Positions 4,019 through 13,586 of a stretch of 13,586 nucleotides of DNA are shown here, one piece after another. Source of the DNA: Octopus sinensis (Eukaryota); contig NW_021826381.1 of the NCBI RefSeq assembly GCF_006345805.1, forward strand, positions 1 through 13,586, given 5' to 3'. Numbering within the stretch: the first letter of the stretch is position 1; each line of letters opens with the position of its first letter. A program made the position numbers and the translations under genes. The notes beneath the pieces were generated by a model. It saw only the letters and a list, made by a program, of their open reading frames with translations, was not told where the DNA came from and did no database searches.

Positions 4019-4275
4019 TTCCTTCTCGAGCCATGCCTGGCTCAAAAGAGCTGGTTTCCCGGTCCGTCGCAGGTGAGCTGTAAGATGCAGGAGGAAAGAG
4101 TGAGAGAAAGTTGTGGTGAAAGAGTCAGCAGAAGTTTGCAATTACCTTCTACCGGAGCCGCGTGGAGCTTAGGTGTTTCGCCCATAAACACACATATCGC
4201 CCGGTCTGAGCTTCGAACCCGCGATCCCTCGACCGCGAGTCCGCTGCTCGAACCACTAGGCCATGTGCCACCACA
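4019..4275 (-). mobile_element. tRNA-derived SINE, family 2, with a 13-bp target-site duplication
   Basis: Minus strand: A box TGGCCTAGTGG (4253-4263) and B box GGTTCGAAGC (4210-4219); the tail ends GGCATGGCTCGAGAAGGAA. Flanking direct repeats CTCTACAGAGCTG (4006-4018) and CTCTAGAGAGCTG (4276-4288) are 12/13 identical. Confidence 0.9.
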
Positions 4276-4622
4276 CTCTAGAGAGCTGGAATCTGAAGGA
4301 GCATTTACATGTACACTTCTACTAGCTAGACAATCACCAAAGAGCGTAAGGGGAAACCTCTACACTGTCTCTTAACATGCGAAAAATATCAGCTAAATCT
4401 CTCTTAATTATCACCTACATAATGAAAAATAGAAAGCTACACCGGTTAATGTAATCCTACATAAAATATTAACGATACATATATGGAACGCTTTTGATTA
4501 CAGGACAGATTGATCGTGTCTGGCCAATGGTTAAATAACAGTACTAACATTAACAACAACAACAACAACTAAAGCAGAGAATTTCAACCTAGAATTCTTT
4601 TACATCTCGACATATATATGTC

Positions 4623-5030
4623 GTAGGAGTGGCTGTGTGGTAAGTAGCTTGCTTGGCAACCACATGGTCCCGGGCTCAGTCCCACTGCATGGCACCTTGG
4701 GCAACTGCCTTCTACTATAGCCTCGGGCCGACCAAAGCCTTGTGAGTGGATTCGGTAGACGGAAACTGAAAGAAGCCCGTCGTATATATGTATGTATATA
4801 TATGTATGTGTATGTGTATGTGTTTGTCCCCCCAACATCGTTTGACAACCGATGCTGGTGTGTTTACGTCCCCTTAACTTAGCGGTTCGGCAAAAGTGAC
4901 CGATAGAATAAGTTCTAGGCTTACAAAGAATAATTTCTGGGTGGGATCTAATTGCTCACCTAAAGGCGGTGTTCCAGCATTGCCGCAGTAAAATGACTGA
5001 AAAAAATAAAAGAGTTAAAGAATAAAAAAT
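4623..5030 (+). mobile_element. tRNA-derived SINE, family 1, copy B (near full length)
   Basis: A box TGGCTGTGTGG (4630-4640), degenerate B box GGCTCAGTCC (4673-4682), CCTTGGGCAA, an internal (TA)/(TG) tract at ~4783-4826, and an AAAGAG/AAAGAA-type tail. Confidence 0.92.
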
Positions 5031-5049: not shown

Positions 5050-5930
5050 TTTTCTGAATTCACATTTGATGTCAACGATTCCTTCGAGGTAGAACCATAT
5101 TAGTTGACAAGCCTGCACAAAAATGGTCCCTATTTGTTTCAGGGATTACCTGGGCAATGACGGTTTTCAGTGAAGGTATGGCATCGCGAGGATGTTGATT
5201 AGTCTTCATTTCAGCAGCGATCCAAACCTAGTAATGTCATAGAATTTTAATCTGGTGAGTTTGGAGGCTGCAAATTGGATCTCACATGATTGTAAACGTT
5301 ATCTCACATCCATTCTTAGGTTATGTGCCTTTGTGAGAAGGTACTGAGTCTTACTAAAACATGGATGGCCTTCCACTGCGACCTTCATGTACTCTGGATT
5401 TAACAACTGTCTTCATCACCTCAACATAGTCAGTCGCATTAATTCTAAGACCTTTTGCAAAGATGTAAAGTGGCATGGCATACTCTTTTACTTGTTTCAG
5501 TCATTTGACTGCAGCCATGCTGGAGCACCGCCTTTAATCGAGCAACTCGACCCCGGGACTTATTCTTTTTTGTAAGCCCAGTACTTATTCTATCGGTCTC
5601 TTTTGCCGAACCGCTAAGTAACGGGGGACGTAAACGCACCAGCATCGGTTGTCAAGCAATGCTAGGGTGACAAACACAGACACACAAACACACACACGCA
5701 TATATATATACATATATACGACGGGCTTCTTTCAGTTTCCGTCTACCAAATCCACTCACAAGGCATTGGTCGGCCCGAGGCTATAGAAGAAGACACTTGC
5801 CCAAGATGCCACGCAGTGGGACTGAACCCAGAACCATGCGGTTGGTAAACAAGCTACTTACCACACAGCCACTCCTGCACCTTCTTTACTCACTAGTCCA
5901 AAGACCTTTTCAGTTCCAGGGCAGCCAGCC
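5050..5930 (-). mobile_element. maT-type (DD37D) Tc1/mariner transposase remnant, interrupted by SINE copy C
   Basis: Minus-strand translation across the SINE: VFGLVSKEG|DAMPLYIFAKGLRINATDYVEVMKTVVK...GRPSMF**DSVPSHK, frameshift, T*EWM*DNVYNHV..NLQPPNSPD*NSM(D)..VW..AEMKTNQHP...SLKTVIAQV...RACQ. The second catalytic D (5348-5350) and third D (5236-5238) are about 37 codons apart. Confidence 0.85.
5482..5877 (-). mobile_element. tRNA-derived SINE, family 1, copy C, inserted in the maT transposase
   Basis: Full head (CAGGAGTGGCTGTGTGG...GGGTTCAGTCCC), an internal TA/TG tract at ~5673-5718, and the complete 3' module. Removing it rejoins the transposase frame. Confidence 0.93.
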
Positions 5931-6311
5931 CCGTCTGTGATTGTCCGAGGACGGGGCCTCAAATTCTGACCAACGGAATGCCATCAGTTGAAACTCGAAC
6001 CATACGCACGTTTATTCATATTTATTCATCCTCAGTCGTAAGTTTCTTTTTAATTTGTCCCTTCCACCACCGAATAGGTAAACCTACTTACAAACCCATG
6101 ACTCCTTACAAATACACACTTGAGTATATGTATGTATATATATGCATACATATATGTGTGTTTCTGTGTGTGTATGTGTATGTGTGTGTGTTTGTATGTA
6201 CGTATCAGGCCACTGAATAACAGGCTGTTACCTCACTAATAGACATATTGAACAATTTAACCACTTTGAAGTTTAATATATATGCACGAACGTATGTGCA
6301 CAAACGTAGAT

Positions 6312-6338
6312 ACATACATACATACATACATACATACA

Positions 6339-6369
<31 letters not shown>

Positions 6370-6381
6370 GTATGTATGCGC

Positions 6382-6416
<35 letters not shown>
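6312..6416 (+). repeat. Compound (TACA)n-(CA)n microsatellite
   Basis: Read directly. Confidence 0.95.
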
Positions 6417-6421
<5 letters not shown>

Positions 6422-7613
6422 AGAGAAATATACAGATGGGACAGATAAAAAAAAAGTCGACCGCTCAGCAACTCGTTCTTGTAACGAACATTACGCTGTC
6501 TTTGCAAAAAAAAACTACTTGCCATAAACCTGGTTTGCAAGTGATCACAACTGTTGCCTTTAAACAGCGACAACAACCATAAAATGCTACAGAGACTGGT
6601 CTAATGAGGAAATGAATGATCCTTTGATTTTAAACTCATCCTCTTTAGTATGATCTTAATATCGAAAAATACATTTGCGAAAAATACATTCAATACCAAA
6701 CCCCAAATAACACTCACCCATTTACACTTCCAGACTGAAGTAGGTCCACATCATTATCGTAATACATCTGGAAGCAGAAAGATAGTTGAACTGAGTATAG
6801 GAATGGCATAGCTCAGAAAACTGGTATTGCTGTTTCTGTGATCCATCCATAGAGTGGGCCATAAAGACTACAATACTAGTTACTGACATGTCAAAGCTGT
6901 TTAAGTTATGTTTAACACTTTGTCTGTGTAATCGCTTGTCATAATTTCATCCTAAATGTCCATGCTTGTTTTCAGACATTTGGTCAGCTCTGGTTTCATA
7001 TGTTTTGAGTAATAGATAGTTTTCCTTTCATACACGCTAAGTTACTCTAGTGACTGAAGAGAATTGAAAACGCCAAATATGATGAATGATCACCAGGAAA
7101 ATACGTTTCGTGTATCACGTGTGATGCTCAGGACTGGCAAATGACTAACTGAGATGTATGACATTATGATTTAATTGTTTGATATATTCTATAAAAAAAA
7201 AGACTTTTCTATTGTACATATGTAAGCATGTTAACAAATTCCTATTAAACATTTAAACGTAGCTAAATATCCTCACCAGTACATACATTGAACCGCTATC
7301 TACCCTTGATAATAATAATAATAACTCTTCAATCTAGTATAAAGTACTGGTTCACTAATCATATATCTACAGCAAACTCTTAACGCAAGCTGCCATATTG
7401 TTGTATCAAATCACCGCAGTTCGCCATCGAAAACTAGCAAATATAAGACGTTCGACGAGCACCTTCACCTAAACTGATGAATTCTTAATATAAGTTCTTC
7501 TGTCTATGATTTTTCTGCCCTTGCTATAATTTCTATGTTGTAATTCTGAATAGGGACGGAGTGAATTAAAGACTTCAAACAAATCTATTGTATCTTTGTG
7601 ATTGTAATTTACA

Positions 7614-7696
<83 letters not shown>

Positions 7697-7700
7697 TTAT

Positions 7701-7797
<97 letters not shown>
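7614..7797 (+). repeat. (TATC)n tetranucleotide microsatellite, 46 units (44 TATC plus 2 TATT at 7694-7701)
   Basis: Counted from coordinates: 184 bp in phase. Confidence 0.97.
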
Positions 7798-8013
7798 CCA
7801 GGACAATGTAAAACACTATTAAGGTAAGAATTAATATAAGGTATTTAATTTTATAAATATAATTATAAAATTATAAGAGTAACTTCTGAGTTACCACATC
7901 TTAGAACAAGACGCCAAATGGCTCTAAAATTACCTTATTTATCACATAGATACGAGCAGTTTTTTATTTTTTACATGCTAGCTATTTGATAAAATCCTAT
8001 ACAGATTTTATCC

Positions 8014-8223
8014 TTACTCTCTCTCTTTTACTTTTTTACTTGTTTCAGTCATTTGACTGCGGCCATGCTGGAGCACCGACTTTAGTCGAGCAAATCGACC
8101 CCGGGACTTATTCTTTGTAAGCCCAGTACTTATTCTATCGGTCTCTTTTGCCGAACCGCTAAGTGACGGGGACGTAAACACACCAGCATCGGTTGTCAAG
8201 CAATGCTAGGGGGACAAACACAG

Positions 8224-8261
<38 letters not shown>

Positions 8262-8438
8262 GTATATATATATACATAAACGACAGGCTTCTTTCAGTTT
8301 CCGTCTACCAAATTCACTCACAAGGCATTGGTCGGCCCGGGGCTATAGCAGAAGACACTTGCCCAAGATGCCACACAGTGGGACTGAACCCGAAACCATG
8401 TGGTTGGTTAGCAAGCTACTTACCACACAGCCACTCCT
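8014..8438 (-). mobile_element. tRNA-derived SINE, family 1, copy E (best-preserved copy)
   Basis: Minus strand: AGGAGTGGCTGTGTGG head, GGGTTCAGTCCC B box (8380-8391), an internal TA/TG tract at ~8215-8280, and the 3' module with GTCGATTTGCTCGAC and CAGTCAAATGACTG hairpins. Confidence 0.93.
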
Positions 8439-8852
8439 TGATTATAATGATAAATATAAATTCCTTTAAACCAAATTTATTCGCTGCTGAATAATTTGGT
8501 TATTCACACGTGGCTAATATGAACGAATTAGATTTAACTTGTATATCACTGTGAACATTTGTATATACACTGTGGATGCATTGTGTTCGCATTGTATGAA
8601 TAAATGTTTATAATTATGTACCTTCGGTTATGTCATACTGGGGACGGTAAAGGGTGTTACACCCCTAAACCAGAAATCGATCTAGGGCTAAACTTTTTTT
8701 AAAATCTTTTTGTTCATTCCCTCGCTTTCGGTCCATATCTATGTGATAAATAAGGTAGTTTTAGAGCCATTTGTGTCTTCTTCTAGCTTATGACATTACT
8801 CAGTAGTGTCATTATAATTTTATAATTATATTTATAAAATTAAATACTTTAT

Positions 8853-8948
8853 AATGTATGTATGTATGTATGTATGTAGTATGGTCTGTATGTATGTATG
8901 TATGTATGTATGTATGTATGTATGTATGTATGTATGTATGTATATATA

Positions 8949-8983
<35 letters not shown>

Positions 8984-9004
8984 GATATATATATATATAC
9001 ATAT

Positions 9005-9076
<72 letters not shown>
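8853..9076 (+). repeat. Compound (TATG)n-(TA)n-(GATA)n microsatellite
   Basis: Read directly. Confidence 0.95.
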
Positions 9077-9077
<1 letters not shown>

Positions 9078-9103
9078 AAAGTAGATAGAGAGAAGTTTTT
9101 ACA

Positions 9104-9439
9104 GACGTAGGAGTAGCTGTGTGGTAAGTAGGTTGTTTACGAACCACATGGTTCCGGGTTCAGTCCAACTGCGTGGCACCTTGGGCAAGTGAGTGGATTT
9201 GGTAGACGGAAACTGAAAGAAGCCTGTCGTATATATGTATATATATGTACGTGAAGGTATATATTTGTGTGTCTGTGTTTGTCCCTGGTGTGTTTAAGTC
9301 CCCGTAACAGTTCGGCAAAAGAGACCGATAAAATAAGTATTAGGCTTACAAAGAATAAGACCAGGGGTCCATTTGCTCGACTAAAGGTGGTGCTCCAGCA
9401 TGGCCACTGTCACATGGCTGAAACAAGTAAGAGTAAAGA

Positions 9440-9441
<2 letters not shown>
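9104..9441 (+). mobile_element. tRNA-derived SINE, family 1, copy F (two internal deletions)
   Basis: GACGTAGGAGTAGCTGTGTGG head and GGGTTCAGTCC B box. Relative to copies B/C/E it lacks the segment between GGGCAAGTG and AGTGGATTTGG and the segment between TTTGTCC and CTGGTGTG. The tail is GAAACAAGTAAGAGTAAAGAG. Confidence 0.92.
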
Positions 9442-9488
<47 letters not shown>

Positions 9489-9894: not shown

Positions 9895-10021
9895 CGTATG
9901 TATGTATGTTATGTATGTATGCATGTATGTATGTATGTATGTATGTATGTATGTATGTATGTATGTATGTATGTATGTATGTATGTATGTACGTATGTAT
10001 GTATGTGCGTGTGTATAAGTC

Positions 10022-10055
<34 letters not shown>

Positions 10056-10075
10056 TATGTTTGTATGTATACAAA
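9895..10075 (+). repeat. Compound (TATG)n-(TA)n microsatellite
   Basis: Read directly. Confidence 0.93.
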
Positions 10076-10539
10076 TTTACATATAGCGACATATACCTCT
10101 CTGTGTGCGCGTGTATGTGTGTGTGTTTGTGCGCGTGTGTCTGTGTTTCATGTGTGTGCATAAGTGTCTTCGCGAGCACACATCTGGGTGTACGCGCGCG
10201 CGTTGTGGGTACCGATGATTTCGACTTAATTTTCTAGCATCATTACGAAAGTTAATTTGCATATTTCACTCGGCAGTAACGAAATACTCGGCAGTAATGT
10301 CTTCCTCGCCTTCCACCACCATCGTTGTCGTCGTCGTTGTCATCAATAGCTCAATGCCAGTCGTCATGTGTGTCTTGGAACAGGCTTCCACAGACCTATC
10401 AACCTCACCAAGAACCATCTGTTGCGCCTGGCCTCCTCTCCCTATCCCCCACCCTACACACCCTCCCACGGAGTTAGTCTCTTCAAATTTCACTGGAAAA
10501 TAGAGCGTGACATTGGCAAAGGAAGCATAAATAATTCAA

Positions 10540-11285
10540 CATGAGGTCTTGCGTGCATGTGTGTCCTGCAAATGAGTGTGTGAGTGTGTGCGTGCATGTA
10601 TTCTTCTGTATGCATATTGTGTATGTGTGTGTGTGCGTGTCTTTGTATGTTCGTCTGCACATTTGCATACGTGTGTGGGGGTGCGTGTGTGCGGGTGCGT
10701 GTGTGCGGGTGCGTGTGGGGGGGGGTGCGGGGTGCGTGTGCGTCTGTATATATATCTTATAGCTATATCTATATTTATTATATATGTATATATACATATA
10801 TATACATATATATTTATGTACATATATATACTAATGTATGTATGTATGCATGTATGTATGTATGTATGCATGCATGCATTATGTATGTATGTGTGGTGTA
10901 TGTATGCATGCATGCATGTATGTATGTATGTATGTATGTATGTATGCATGCATGCATGTATGTATGTATTATGTATATGTATGTATGCATGCATGCATGT
11001 ATGCATGTATGTTGATGTATGTATGTATGCATGCATGTATGTATGTGTGATGTATGTATGTATGTAGTATGTATGCATGTATGGTATTTATGTATGTATG
11101 TTGTAGTATGTATGTGTATGCATGTATGTATGTATGTATGTTATGTATGTATGTATGTTGTATGTATGTATGCATGTATGTATGGTATGTATGTATGTAT
11201 GTATGCAGCATGTATGTATGTAATGTATGTATGTATGTGTGTATGTATGTATGTATGTAATGCATGCATGTATTATGTATGTATA
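10540..11285 (+). repeat. Large compound simple-repeat block: (TG)/(TGCG), (TA), then a (TATG)/(CATG) mosaic
   Basis: Read directly; it explains all the MYVC/HTYI ORFs in this interval. Confidence 0.92.
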
Positions 11286-11404
11286 CCAGAGACATGCCAT
11301 ATTCACACAAATATATTCCAAGTTGCGTAAAAGTTATTTCATATTTTCACTGATGACTTTTTGGGCAACTTCTTCTCCATGACATATCAGTATTTGAATA
11401 CAAA

Positions 11405-11753
11405 ACTTTAATTACTATTGACAAACTTTGTGCACATCTTGTTGTGTATGTTGGTCGTTAACACACATGTTTCGGCTGATATAGCCCCACCAGCCTGATA
11501 TACACGCCACCACCAAGTGTCTTGGGGAAAATTTCGAACCTCGTTCTCATTCTAAGTATTTTCGTGATATTAATTATTATTATTATTATTATATATTATT
11601 ATTATTATTATGATTATTATTATTATTAATTATTATTGTTGTTGTGTTGTTGTTGTTGTTGTGTTGTTGTTGTTTGGTAATTCAGGTCACTGCCTTGAAT
11701 CGAATCGGAATCTTGGGTTAGTAGCCCTCGCACTTACACTACGCTATATGCCC
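11405..11753 (-). mobile_element. tRNA-headed retroposon, family 4, left arm of the inverted pair
   Basis: Minus strand: GGGCATA-TAGCGTAGTGT (A-box-like, 11736-11746), GGGCTACTAACCC anticodon-like arm, GATTCGATTC degenerate B box, an (AAC)n-(AAT)n tract, CGAAAATACTTAGAATGAGAAC...GGTTCGAAATTTTCCCCAAGACAC, and GGCTG...CAGCCGAAAC. Colinear with the + strand copy. Confidence 0.85.
11460..11521 (-). ncRNA. Second, core-disrupted hammerhead motif in the left arm
   Basis: Minus strand: GACAC, then a CTGATGA core replaced by about 20 nt of degenerate duplicated sequence, then A-GGCTG-(12 nt)-CAGCC-GAA-ACATGT-GTGTT. Stem II and both stem I arms are intact; the core and H17 are lost. Confidence 0.5.
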
Positions 11754-11757
11754 ACTT

Positions 11758-12090
11758 GTGTTAAGAGCGCGGGCTACTAACCCCAAGATTCCGAGTTCGA
11801 TTCAAGGCAGTGACTTGAATAATAATATAATAATAAAATATAATTATAAAATAATAATAATAATAACACAACAAACAACAACAACAACACCACAACACAA
11901 CACAACACCAACATCGAAAATACCTTAGGAATGAGAAGGCAGGTTCGAAATTTCCCCAAGACACCTGATGAAGGCTGGAGGGTATCTCCGAAACGTTGTA
12001 TTAACAACAAGCAAGATGAGAACAAATGTAAATAAATGTAAATAATTTAAATAGTGTACATAATTCCTCATCTCTGAAATATAGAACTGT
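11758..12090 (+). mobile_element. tRNA-headed retroposon, family 4, right arm (truncated within the A box)
   Basis: GTGTTAAGAGCGCGGGCTACTAACCCC (GGG-CTACTAA-CCC arm, ACT in the anticodon position), B box GTTCGATTC (11795-11803), an (AAT)n-(AAC)n tract, and a body colinear with the left arm. The 3' end is approximate. Confidence 0.85.
11960..12002 (+). ncRNA. Degenerate minimal type I hammerhead ribozyme motif
   Basis: GACAC (stem I 5' arm), CTGATGA (11965-11971), a stem II region with GGAG/CTCC, GAA (11990-11992), ACGT palindromic stem III, T (H17, 11997), and GTATT (stem I 3' arm, 4/5 pairs). Order and spacing fit a type I hammerhead, but stem II is altered. Confidence 0.6.
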
Positions 12091-12152
12091 TGATACAACT
12101 TGTTGCCGAGGTCGTTGCACAATTGGTGTTATTGTTGATTTTCGTATATAAC

Positions 12153-12442
12153 AATATAGCATTATCACCCGGCGGTTGCCGGGTTTGTAAGGGTAATAAC
12201 TATATAAGCATTTTTAGAGAGTTATAGCCAAAAAATAGCAAAAAATTCATTAAAAATGGAAAAAAAATTTTTTTTTTAATCGTAGACTCATCGTAGACGC
12301 GCACTAATACCCAGAAGGGTTCGATATGAATCACGACTATAAGATACCCGGTTTTGGTTAAACTGCACCGCAAAATGTGGGAGTAGTTAGGAATCTAAAT
12401 CGTAGGAGACAGACATACAACTTGACTTTTATATATAAAGAT
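12153..12442 (+). mobile_element. Probable non-autonomous Helitron/Helentron-like (HINE/DINE-1-type) element
   Basis: A 5' GC-rich hairpin ACCCGGC-GGTT-GCCGGGT (12167-12184) just inside the start, A-rich body, and a 3' ACAGACA...CTTTTATATATAAAGAT end with the palindrome TTTATATATAAA (12428-12439). This architecture resembles DINE-1/Lep1-type elements. No coding sequence and no TSD seen. Confidence 0.5.
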
Positions 12443-12481
12443 AATCATTAATTGTATGTTCTCTATTTTACAGCTTTGATA

Positions 12482-12702
12482 ATGAGTAGTGAAAAAATAT
12501 CAAACGGATCCATTTTACGCTACCTGCGGATAAAAGGACTGACTGCAAAGGCATCGGGAAAAGAAATTAATGATGTAAACGGCCTAGGAGCTGTCAACGA
12601 ACGTGTAGCACAAAACTAGTTTGCCGGTTCAAGGTAGGTAATGCTACCCTCGAGGACAATCCGCAGTCAAGGAGACTGTCTGTCATGGAAGATGAGGCTT
12701 AG
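12482..12702 (+). pseudogene. mariner (DD34D) transposase N-terminal HTH fragment
   Basis: MSSEKISNGSILRYLRIKGLTAKASGKEINDVNGLGAVNERVAQN*FA, frameshift, RFKVGNATLEDNPQSRRLSVMEDEA*. It parallels the Hsmar1-type HTH region (GTANERTVQWWFKKF.KGDESLEDEERSGRPS). Confidence 0.85.
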
Positions 12703-12704
12703 CC

Positions 12705-12940
12705 TGAAATTCCGCTACCCGGCAAAGATCAATTGAAGGGATGCACTTCTACAGTATTACAATGGCCCAGGATGCACTGCCAATGTAACCTGACCTTACA
12801 TGTTCAGACTACTTTTTCAGCCATGGCTTATTTCTTGCATAGACAGACATTCAACAATGTGGGTAAGGATGAAAATGGGTGCAGGGAGATTTTTGCCTTA
12901 AATCAAGCCAAATCGTATGGGCTGGGAATTGAGCTTTTCG
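12705..12940 (+). pseudogene. mariner transposase C-terminal fragment, misplaced duplicate (copy 1)
   Basis: RYPAKIN*RDALLQYYNGPGCTANVT / PDLTCSDY / SAMAYFLHRQTFNNVGKDENGCREIFALNQAKSYGLGIELF. About 83% identical (17 mismatches in the first ~100 nt, hand count) to the segment starting at 13340. Confidence 0.85.
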
Positions 12941-12942
12941 CT

Positions 12943-13586
12943 CAAGCACTCGTATATTATCGGCAGAACTTGATCCTTCACAAAGCATCATCATTCGGCA
13001 CCGCTCAAAGTTCGGCCTTGCGAACGAAGACTGTCGTGAAGTTCCTCATAAACTGATCAATGACCAAACTCAGTGAGGTGTGAACACTTGTAAACAACTG
13101 CTGGCAAATCTTCGAGATTTGAGCATCAAAAACTGGATCTATTTTCGTAATCTTAATCAGAGAAATCTATTCCGGTTAGATATCAGAACCTTGTCCAAAC
13201 AAGAGCGGCGTGCACAGAATGTCATGTTGTGTCTTGTGTGAAATTTCAAGGGTGTGTTGCACTTTGTCCAAATGATCATGTTGTGAACGCTAACCTTTAT
13301 GGTCAACAACTGCAGTAAGTATACGATGCATTGAAACCACGCTACCCGGCAATGGTCACTTGAAGACGTGCACTTCTACAGCATTACAATGGCCTAGCAC
13401 GCACTGCCAATGTGACCAGACGTCACACCTTCAGATTACCTTCTTTTCCAAGCCATAGACAGATATTGTTTCCTGCATTGACAGAGATTTAATAATGTGG
13501 ATTGGTTGAAAACGGGTGCCGGGAGATCTTTGCCTTATACCAAGCAAACGGTATGAGCGTGGAACTGAACTTCTTACGTATAATGG
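12943..13586 (+). pseudogene. mariner transposase middle and C-terminal fragment, running to the window edge
   Basis: STRILSAELDPSQSIIIRH...CREVPHKL (WVPHEL-like, 13041-13055)...NTCKQLL..[first-D motif deleted]..NWIYF...NVMLCLV*NFKGVLHF, frameshift, NANLYGQQLQ*VYDALKPRYPAMVT*RRALLQHYNG...PDVTPSDYLLF...RFNNVD...YERGTELL. Confidence 0.88.

Follow-up and report, generated by a model that had tools for sequence, protein, structure and literature searches.

The window analyzed here is a 13,586-nt stretch of Octopus sinensis DNA (contig NW_021826381.1, forward strand). At positions 11407–12089, arm alignments confirm the head-to-head inverted pair that an initial annotation had proposed, with arms about 72–75% identical. 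The longer arm, referred to as the minus copy (11407–11753, minus strand), has the tRNA-like 5′ end GGGCATATAGCGTAGTG. The plus copy (11755–12051, plus strand) is truncated on its 5′ side at around 11755–11761; it lacks the A-box and begins inside the D-arm-like part. Its 5′ end adjoins that of the minus copy and differs from it. Both arms are tripartite: promoter boxes of the tRNA type lie in the head, an (AAT)n/(AAC)n microsatellite comes next, and a hammerhead-like motif lies in the 3′ domain. In both arms, the motif and the boxes are on the same strand. Read in the sense direction, the microsatellite is (AAC)n then (AAT)n in the minus copy (11573–11676, minus strand) and (AAT)n then (AAC)n in the plus copy (11816–11912, plus strand). 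This opposite order of the blocks argues against a simple single-event palindrome, and the microsatellite may represent a fast-evolving middle part of each copy. Identity between the arms is best at the inner ends (around 89%) and least at the outer termini (around 52%). Twin priming seems a poor account of the pair, as both arms hold the same parts of the element and not complementary ones.

On the plus arm only, a 38-nt extension (12052–12089, plus strand) lies between the end of the arm homology in alignment A2 and a candidate right target-site duplication, TTGATACAAC (12090–12099, plus strand), seen in the flank comparison. The candidate left duplication is TTGAATACAAAAC (11394–11406, plus strand). 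The flanks share a long direct similarity, which we do not accept as a target-site duplication since it is not significant (p ~0.11). About 110 bp from the pair lies the end of a long (TATG)n tract. Blastn searches of the window with both arms revealed no third copy and gave microsatellite matches only, and exact-pattern scans of viral, metagenome, and genome contigs yielded no copy either, the four 19-mer matches being due to chance and without extension. A six-frame protein query with both arms concatenated returned nothing at E ≤ 1, and a literature search for the element sequence found nothing relevant.

The initial annotation assigned a tRNA-like head to each arm. Our box scan supports this for the minus copy, in which the A-box-like TAGCGTAGTGT (11736–11746, minus strand; one mismatch to TRGCNNAGTGG) and the B-box-like GATTCGATTCA (11696–11706, minus strand; two mismatches) are 40 nt apart and on the correct strand for a tRNA-type head. 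Moreover, this arm ends at the position expected for the tRNA +1. The plus copy retains a B-box only, AGTTCGATTCA (11794–11804, plus strand). Four A+B pairs were observed in the window against 0.03 expected; the other three are recognized SINE heads, and the remaining five A-box matches of the window are all inside SINE heads. A second B-box-like sequence, GGTTCGAAATT (11530–11540, minus strand), occurs in the minus copy's 3′ domain, where its extra T makes a TTTT run upstream of the hammerhead-like motif, a potential Pol III stop. No T4 stop is present ahead of the motif in the plus copy.

With default settings, ARAGORN did not call a tRNA at the inverted pair; at 75%, its only calls here were on the wrong strand or spanned the palindrome, whereas control SINE heads were recovered at 75–80%. 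The Rfam tRNA family gave no match on 741 nt at E ≤ 10. A bona fide SINE head of the same window, used as a control, likewise scored none, so Rfam is uninformative as a tRNA test. The miRNA-like Rfam matches on 11692–11808 were discarded as artefacts of the palindrome center.

The window also contains five copies of an abundant tRNA-derived octopus SINE with the same layout (A/B-box head, internal microsatellite, unique 3′ part). This SINE has no similarity to the studied element beyond simple repeats and carries no hammerhead-like motif. Its heads are found in the correct orientation by relaxed ARAGORN, whereas the head of the studied element is not. Peptides from the ORFs of the abundant SINE match three O. 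bimaculoides UniRef proteins, and no copy of this SINE turned up when genome and viral contigs were scanned for traces of host contamination. Decayed mariner remnants are visible in the window as well, and a protein query with the mariner pseudo-ORF gave no match.

A sequence check recovered all the motifs from which the initial annotation had assembled a hammerhead, at the positions given there. According to descriptor search, folding, and sequence, the motif of the plus copy covers 11960–12002 (plus strand). It comprises the 5′ strand of helix I, GACAC (11960–11964), the core box CTGATGA (11965–11971), an unpaired A (11972), a disrupted helix II (11973–11989), GAA (11990–11992), ACGT (11993–11996), a T corresponding to U17 (11997), 3′ of which cleavage is predicted, and the 3′ strand of helix I, GTATT (11998–12002). 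Helix I forms 4/5 pairs (GACAC/GUAUU), and GAA-ACGU-U satisfies A15.1–U16.1, a palindromic 15.2–16.2, and an H17 that is not G. In the canonical register, helix II is reduced to GG/CC (2 bp); beyond a 5-nt bulge, GGAG/CUCC (a 4–5-bp helix) can form instead.

The motif of the minus copy is degenerate (11460–11521, minus strand; sequence, alignment A2, and MFE fold). Its GACAC (11521–11517) is followed by UUGGUGG (11516–11510) where CUGAUGA is expected, without the essential A6 and A9, and a 13-nt insertion, TGGCGTGTATATC (11509–11497), lies between UUGGUGG and helix II. Helix II is preceded by an unpaired A and consists of a perfect 8 bp, GGCUGGUG/UAUCAGCC (11495–11488/11481–11474), with the loop GGGCUA. 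It directly adjoins GAAAC (11473–11469), and the MFE fold retains all 8 bp; the GGCTG/CAGCC stem previously described as closing on GAAA is thus present and longer than reported. Helix I pairs at 5/5 positions with GTGTT (11464–11460), but its register relative to position 17 is not legal: GAA-ACAUGU-G offers no register combining A15.1–U16.1 with a non-G at 17. The minus copy also carries a tandem duplication, TGGTGGCGTGTATATCAGGC/TGGTGGGGCTATATCAGCC, and alignment A2 places the TGATGA of the plus copy against its TGGTGG. As annotated, neither copy is intact, helix II being broken in the plus copy, and the minus copy having a degenerate box, an insertion, and no legal cleavage register.

The proposal that the two copies merge into a complete minimal hammerhead (min-HHR) held in part. 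Free merging of the copies as aligned in A2 produces a strict min-HHR. Another alignment can lose it, however: a second MAFFT run with slightly different bounds did not recover the merged motif. This “complete” hammerhead is a chimera of two copies, and the ancestral state cannot be polarized from two copies. With descriptors whose thresholds were set after the data had been seen, the plus copy matched the relaxed form, as did 0/3000 dinucleotide-shuffled windows, while the strict form was failed by each copy alone and satisfied by their merge. Merging gave no strict min-HHR in the other repeat-pair alignments of the window (about 9 kb) and three in 32,000 simulated diverged pairs, that is, around 1 in 10,000. 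The MFE structure of the merged RNA consists of helix I and helix II, and a helix II closed by G10.1–C11.1 and joined to A9 and G12 is present in the merged sequence only. Statistically, the resemblance of the motif to a hammerhead goes beyond chance.

Other checks suggested in the initial annotation did not favor a ribozyme. Rfam detected no hammerhead family on 11380–12120 at E ≤ 10, in a search that had no control and in which minimal variants lacking loop 3 may score poorly; for the whole window, the 150 listed of 190 matches include no hammerhead family. The core is not better conserved than its surroundings: between the two arms, the motif is conserved at 55% of alignment columns, no better than the flanks, CUGAUGA matches at 4/7 positions, and there are no compensatory changes. 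At three of the four paralogous or orthologous box positions, the sequence is TGGTGG or TGGAGG and not TGATGA; the ancestral state may therefore not have been CUGAUGA, which could be derived. The AGGCTGG junction is common to the copies and is compatible with an ancestral tandem duplication of about 20 nt that would have parted the box from helix II. The difference between ACGT (plus) and ACAT (minus) is a CpG-to-CpA change, which favors ACGU as the probable ancestral form.

Positions 11407–12089 are thus a plausible relic of a hammerhead-bearing SINE-like retroposon. The explanation we prefer, and to which we give roughly an even chance, is that two old copies of a SINE-like retroposon, both killed by mutation, lie at the locus, each with the remains of a minimal type I hammerhead like those at the termini of Penelope-like elements (PLEs). 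Under this explanation, the element is about 330–350 bp long and its two copies are joined head to head. Of the SINE/retrozyme hybrid put forward in the initial annotation, the tRNA-type head and the non-random min-HHR-like motif downstream on the same strand stand, whereas an intact ribozyme is found in neither copy. The ancestral motif would have had a 5-bp helix I, CUGAUGA, one unpaired A, and a helix II of at most 8 bp with a G10.1–C11.1 closing pair. On the 3′ side of helix II would have come GAA and then a palindromic ACGU helix III without a loop, with cleavage after U17.

The strongest competitor, possible although on the unlikely side, is an ordinary tRNA-derived octopus SINE that was mobilized by a LINE and never had a ribozyme. 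The hammerhead likeness would then have arisen by chance from a segment beside a hairpin that is rich in TGG and locally duplicated, and its completeness would come from picking the convenient states of two copies. The tandem duplication of the minus copy, in which TGGTGG is the counterpart of TGATGA, fits this account, as do G, not A, as the majority state at the box positions, the lack of an Rfam hammerhead match, the variation of the merged motif with the alignment, the post hoc choice of descriptor thresholds, and the head-microsatellite-tail layout that the abundant octopus SINE displays without a hammerhead. It has to accommodate, on the other hand, the failure of shuffled windows to reproduce the relaxed single-copy match and the rarity of the merged motif in simulated pairs. 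The 8-bp helix II of the minus copy set exactly against GAAAC also speaks against it, and so do several independent features that fit published min-HHR hallmarks not used in finding the motif.

These hallmarks were described for PLEs, in which a min-HHR has a helix I of 4–5 bp, an unpaired nucleotide after A9, a G10.1–C11.1 pair, and a long helix II, has no loop 3 and a palindromic 15.2–16.2, and is predicted to act in a dimeric mode (PMC4209133). Dual min-HHRs of PLEs occur on opposite strands, 100–700 bp apart (PMC4209133). The merged motif shares the architecture of the pseudo-LTR min-HHRs, with their 7–8-bp helix II and their solo or opposite-strand paired arrangement (Cervera & de la Peña, 2014, PMC4209133). 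It differs from them in following a tRNA-like head and in passing the strict descriptor only as a merge, and the locus has no PLE ORF or tandem pLTR. An abutting inverted copy with a 5′ truncation is a described hallmark of PLE insertions (PMC8557442). What recalls a PLE insertion at the locus is the inverted copy, which adjoins the other and has its own 5′ end, and the one-sided extension, which may be comparable to the one-sided 30–40-bp “tail” of PLE insertions; no partial tandem (pLTR) was found near the pair, and the opposite microsatellite order of the arms argues against one clean event. A Pfam scan for RT and GIY-YIG returned no family in six frames of 11290–12480 or in three frames of 12440–13586, and it also missed the decayed mariner remnants. 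If the element is PLE-related at all, it is non-autonomous or a terminal fragment.

It is rather improbable that the arms are simply 3′-terminal (pseudo-LTR) fragments of a PLE, that is, two heavily 5′-truncated inverted copies with a coincidental likeness to tRNA boxes. PLE min-HHRs do sit in terminal repeats, mostly as solo truncated copies and sometimes as opposite-strand pairs (PMC4209133), and inverted 5′-truncated partners, a one-sided 30–40-bp tail, and a bias toward microsatellites are PLE traits (PMC8557442), which the differing and abutting 5′ ends, the extension at 12052–12089, and the nearby (TATG)n tract recall. However, an A+B pair at tRNA spacing is improbable by chance, and the longer arm stops where the tRNA +1 would be. 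That no frame of 11290–13586 yielded a remnant of RT or GIY-YIG argues in the same direction, though weakly given the missed mariner remnants, and octopus Naiad-type PLEs were reported without canonical hammerheads (PMC8557442). That 11407–12089 is one non-autonomous DNA transposon (MITE/foldback) with terminal inverted repeats of about 330 bp and nearly no loop is highly improbable: the near-loopless inverted repeat, the internal simple repeats, and the possible flanking direct repeat agree with it, but the identity gradient is the reverse of that of transposase-bound TIRs, the arms are unequal at the center and differ in microsatellite order, and the idea would require two coincidences, one for the promoter boxes and one for the hammerhead-like motif.

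For the hammerhead-bearing SINE-like retroposon, the following mechanism can be proposed. In intact members, the internal promoter would drive Pol III transcription through the 3′ domain. Two hammerhead units would then dimerize through their palindromic helix III and cleave 3′ of GUU, and the processed RNA might be reverse-transcribed by a Penelope-like RT/GIY-YIG enzyme, whose integration would typically leave an abutting, inverted, 5′-truncated copy. The anatomy of the pair is suggestive of such Penelope-type mobilization. The inactivating lesions present in both copies make the locus itself inactive, without functional consequence of its own. We regard as doubtful the more ambitious view of a still-active octopus SINE family with a Pol III tRNA-type head that relies on a dimer-type minimal hammerhead to trim itself and on a Penelope-like RT/GIY-YIG enzyme, not a LINE, for its copying.

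Elements combining a tRNA-derived part with a hammerhead are not new. In the account given in PMC2770079, Sm-alpha and Sj-alpha of Schistosoma are tRNA-derived SINE-like retroposons long known to carry hammerheads, and the novelty claimed by the initial annotation was therefore overstated. The octopus element resembles them in being short and non-autonomous and in its tRNA-derived head, behind which they carry a type I hammerhead in the body of the element (Ferbeyre et al., 1998; Laha et al., 2000, cited in PMC2770079). Sm-alpha is there described with a tRNA-Gln-like head and a high copy number (PMC2770079). Its hammerhead is canonical, active, and detectable with Rfam, whereas the octopus motif is minimal, lacks loop 3, is broken in both copies, and is Rfam-negative. 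The cephalopod host and the internal microsatellite that parts the head from the motif also distinguish the octopus element from Sm-alpha as described in that source.

Metazoan non-LTR retrozymes form head-to-tail tandem arrays of 170–400-bp units, each with a type I hammerhead (PMC7229834). They occur in molluscs (mussel) and were proposed to be non-autonomous partners of PLEs (PMC7229834; 10.64898/2026.07.22.740005). The octopus element resembles them in being non-coding, low in GC, and in the range of about 170–400 bp (Cervera & de la Peña, 2020, PMC7229834; 2026 preprint, 10.64898/2026.07.22.740005). Retrozymes, however, are tandem, mostly have canonical hammerheads, and are expressed as circRNAs, whereas the octopus pair is inverted and without a tandem. 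The octopus pair has a tRNA-like head, with which retrozymes have not been described; the main text of the 2026 preprint mentions neither tRNA nor Pol III.

If a family consensus held an intact minimal hammerhead, the schistosome design of a tRNA-SINE plus a hammerhead would reach cephalopods, and it would offer a natural case of a Pol III-driven SINE dependent on Penelope-like machinery. An active SINE family, if real, would mean a direct partnership between a SINE and a PLE, and cephalopods would have their first described retroposon with a hammerhead. The question bears on which elements Penelope-like RTs mobilize in trans and on the role of their hammerheads (PMC4209133; 10.64898/2026.07.22.740005). 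Inverted SINE pairs also matter for the double-stranded RNA landscape in cephalopods.

Arm alignments showed that window positions 11407-12089 form an inverted head-to-head pair, two copies of one repeat: a minus copy at about 11407-11753 (- strand, read as reverse complement) and a plus copy at about 11755-12051 (+). A 38-nt stretch without counterpart in the minus arm follows 3' of the plus copy (12052-12089, +). Overall identity between the arms is 72-75%, with about 89% at the inner ends (heads) and about 52% over the outer 50 nt. In A2, the arm-to-arm alignment used for merging the copies, homology stops near 12051 and 11407. Blastn of the arms revealed no further copy of the repeat in the window, where only microsatellite parts match elsewhere. 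In sense orientation, the plus copy carries (AAT)n then (AAC)n, and the minus copy the reverse, (AAC)n then (AAT)n. At the start of the 3' domain stands GGTTCGAAATTT(T)CCCCAAGACAC, well conserved and including a second B-box-like word.

The initial annotation had placed a tRNA-like head in each arm. The minus copy has, on the same strand and spaced by 40 nt, an A-box-like TAGCGTAGTGT (11746-11736, -, 1 mismatch to the Pol III A-box consensus) and a B-box-like GATTCGATTCA (11706-11696, -, 2 mismatches to the B-box consensus). Four such A+B pairs were observed in the window against 0.03 expected from shuffles, and the remaining three are recognised SINE heads (spacing 43-44 nt). The plus copy, which begins within the D-arm-like region, keeps only the B box (11794-11804, +). 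At the pair, ARAGORN called no tRNA with default settings and gave only wrong-strand or palindrome-spanning calls at a 75% threshold; as a positive comparison, it recovered the heads of the abundant octopus SINE in the right orientation at 75-80%. Rfam gave no tRNA match at the pair, which is uninformative because a control SINE head was likewise unmatched. The sequence supports a predicted tRNA-type internal promoter, and a recognisable tRNA fold is not supported. TTTT, a potential Pol III terminator, lies at 11528-11531 in the minus copy, upstream of the hammerhead-like motif; the plus copy has TTT (11949-11951), and its sense strand has no T4 run between the head and beyond the 3' end.

The hammerhead motifs reported for both copies, including CTGATGA, stem II and GAA, are present in the sequence and, as stated then, neither copy holds an intact ribozyme. 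The plus-copy motif reads GACAC / CUGAUGA (11965-71) / A / GGCUGGAGGGUAUCUCC / GAA / ACGU / U (11997) / GUAUU. It has the core box, GAA, A15.1-U16.1, a palindromic 15.2-16.2, a non-G at position 17 and four of the five helix I pairs. Its helix II is broken: the canonical register forms only G-C, G-C, and the alternative helix GGAG/CUCC leaves a 5-nt bulge after A9. The minus-copy motif reads GACAC / UUGGUGG / UGGCGUGUAUAUC / A / GGCUGGUG-GGGCUA-UAUCAGCC / GAA / ACAUGU / GUGUU. Its 8-bp helix II is perfect and closes on GAAAC; A6 and A9 are missing, 13 extra nucleotides separate the box from helix II (alignment A2), and no register combines A15.1-U16.1 with a non-G at position 17. An isolated second CTGATGA occurs in the left flank (11350-11356), with the other hammerhead features absent around it.

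Our descriptor follows the minimal type I hammerhead (min-HHR) of Penelope-like element (PLE) termini as published (PMC4209133), with thresholds set after the locus had been seen: a 5-nt helix I tolerating one mismatch; CUGANGA; no more than one unpaired nucleotide; a helix II of 4 bp or longer with a closing G-C pair; GAA; A...U enclosing an inner palindrome; H17; then the second strand of helix I. This strict form had no match in the window, and Rfam, the check proposed by the initial annotation, returned no hammerhead family at E<=10 on 11380-12120, nor among the 150 matches listed of 190 for the whole window. When the bulge was relaxed to 0-5 nt, the plus copy was the sole match in the window, with none on either strand of 3000 whole-window shuffles that preserved dinucleotide composition. 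We also let either copy's base, and either state per indel block, be chosen freely in A2. The resulting merge lattice includes a strict min-HHR where one was expected, so the complete hammerhead claimed from merging was recovered with A2, but it is alignment-dependent and was lost in a second MAFFT run with slightly different bounds. The same test gave no match on ten pairwise alignments of other SINE copies (about 9 kb columns, both strands) and 3 in 32,000 simulated pairs, which were more diverged than the real pair. In its predicted MFE structure the merged RNA forms both helix I and the 8-bp helix II; helix I is not formed in the predicted fold of the real plus-copy RNA. Since many invertebrate genomes hold minimal hammerheads in their thousands (PMC4209133), the prior for one is not small. 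At the level of this window, a chance origin of the motif is unlikely, post hoc thresholds and alignment dependence notwithstanding, and we regard an ordinary SINE with a chance hammerhead look-alike as a doubtful second reading.

Whether the ancestor was intact was judged from two copies, whose differences cannot be polarised. In favour, decay is unlikely to have produced the minus copy's 8-bp helix II exactly against GAAAC, or, in the plus copy, an exact CUGAUGA just one nucleotide ahead of the same GGCUGG. Plus ACGT and minus ACAT differ by a change of CpG type, pointing to ACGU as the probable ancestral state. Against it, the minus copy has a roughly 20-nt tandem duplication, TGGTGGCGTGTATATCAGGC / TGGTGGGGCTATATCAGCC, and TGATGA...AGGC / TGGAGGG... 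in the plus copy may represent both of these units with a deletion. This reading would make TGATGA paralogous to TGGTGG, and under it the A6 and A9 positions are G in 3/4 readings. Between the arms CUGAUGA matches at only 4/7 positions, GACAC and GAAAC at 5/5 each; the motif overall is conserved in 55% of alignment columns, no better than its flanks, and the two arms show no compensatory changes. The motifs noted in the initial annotation are confirmed, and its reading of them as a SINE/retrozyme hybrid is supported in part. The most likely reading, held with moderate confidence, is that both copies are dead and belong to a SINE-like retroposon with a tRNA-type head, its 3' domain being a Penelope-type minimal hammerhead relic.

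Published traits of PLE insertions are an inverted copy that abuts the element and is truncated at its 5' end, a tail of 30-40 bp on one side only and a microsatellite bias (PMC8557442), and in Schistosoma min-HHRs form opposite-strand pairs 100-700 bp apart (PMC4209133). Our pair has an inverted truncated partner and the 38-nt one-sided extension; the two 5' ends meet to within a few bases, the plus copy being the shorter, and a long (TATG)n tract lies about 110 bp away. There is no tandem or pLTR at the pair. A Pfam scan found no RT/EN remnant, a weak negative because the same scan missed decayed mariner remnants. The microsatellite blocks run in opposite order in the two arms, which is at odds with a clean palindrome from a single event. 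Given PLE-like features on one side and, on the other, the absent tandem, pLTR and RT/EN and the discordant microsatellite order, Penelope-type mobilisation is no more than suggested. We consider it improbable that the copies are themselves truncated PLE termini. Candidate imperfect target-site duplications lie on either side of the whole pair, at 11394-11406 (TTGAATACAAAAC) and 12090-99 (TTGATACAAC); the similarity of the flanks is not significant (p about 0.11). A foldback element or MITE is very improbable.

Elsewhere, the abundant tRNA-derived octopus SINE (roughly 400 bp) has five copies (706-1133, 4625-5021, 5481-5876, 8024-8438 and 9106-9444; 61-87% alignment-column identity, pairwise MAFFT) and carries an internal (TA)n/(TG)n microsatellite. 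Peptides translated from it have UniRef matches in Octopus bimaculoides, up to 93% identical, meaning SINE-derived stretches within annotated O. bimaculoides genes; the SINE copies and these matches mark the host as an octopus. One copy is enclosed by another inverted repeat (7607-7952 and 8736-9086), whose arms show 76% identity in blastn and 85% of columns in MAFFT; each consists of a long (TATC)n tract and AT-rich unique sequence of about 130 bp. A third kind of tRNA-like repeat has its head at 4198-4276 (-), where a perfect A-box, TGGCCTAGTGG (4263-4253), is followed 44 nt further on by a B-box; ARAGORN calls this head tRNA-Arg(gcg) when run at a 90% threshold. A mariner-like transposase reading frame at 12480-13586, its motifs seen by eye in translation, is so heavily decayed that it has no Pfam or protein-database match; it contains an internal tandem duplication of roughly 630 bp (12705-12936 vs 13332-13572, 77% identity). 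Long runs of (TATG)n/(CATG)n and (TA)n/(TG)n occupy 10800-11290, 480-700, 6100-6390, 8900-9010 and 9930-10100; these microsatellites produced dozens of sub-threshold Rfam miRNA matches (mir-297, mir-3149, mir-466 and others), rejected as spurious.

The motif type at the pair agrees with the min-HHR of PLEs (PMC4209133). Non-LTR retrozymes carry type I hammerheads, are present in molluscs as tandem arrays (PMC7229834) and were recently proposed as non-autonomous PLE partners (10.64898/2026.07.22.740005). Their unit size is similar to that of our repeat, but they are tandem and tRNA heads are not described for them, whereas the pair is inverted with a tRNA-type head. Our literature search found no description of a hammerhead-bearing repeat in cephalopods, the sole cephalopod mention being of Naiad PLEs, without canonical hammerheads (PMC8557442). 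The combination of a tRNA-derived, SINE-like element with a hammerhead is a design already known: in schistosomes, Sm-alpha and Sj-alpha are tRNA-Gln-like, exceed 10,000 copies and have canonical active hammerheads (PMC2770079).
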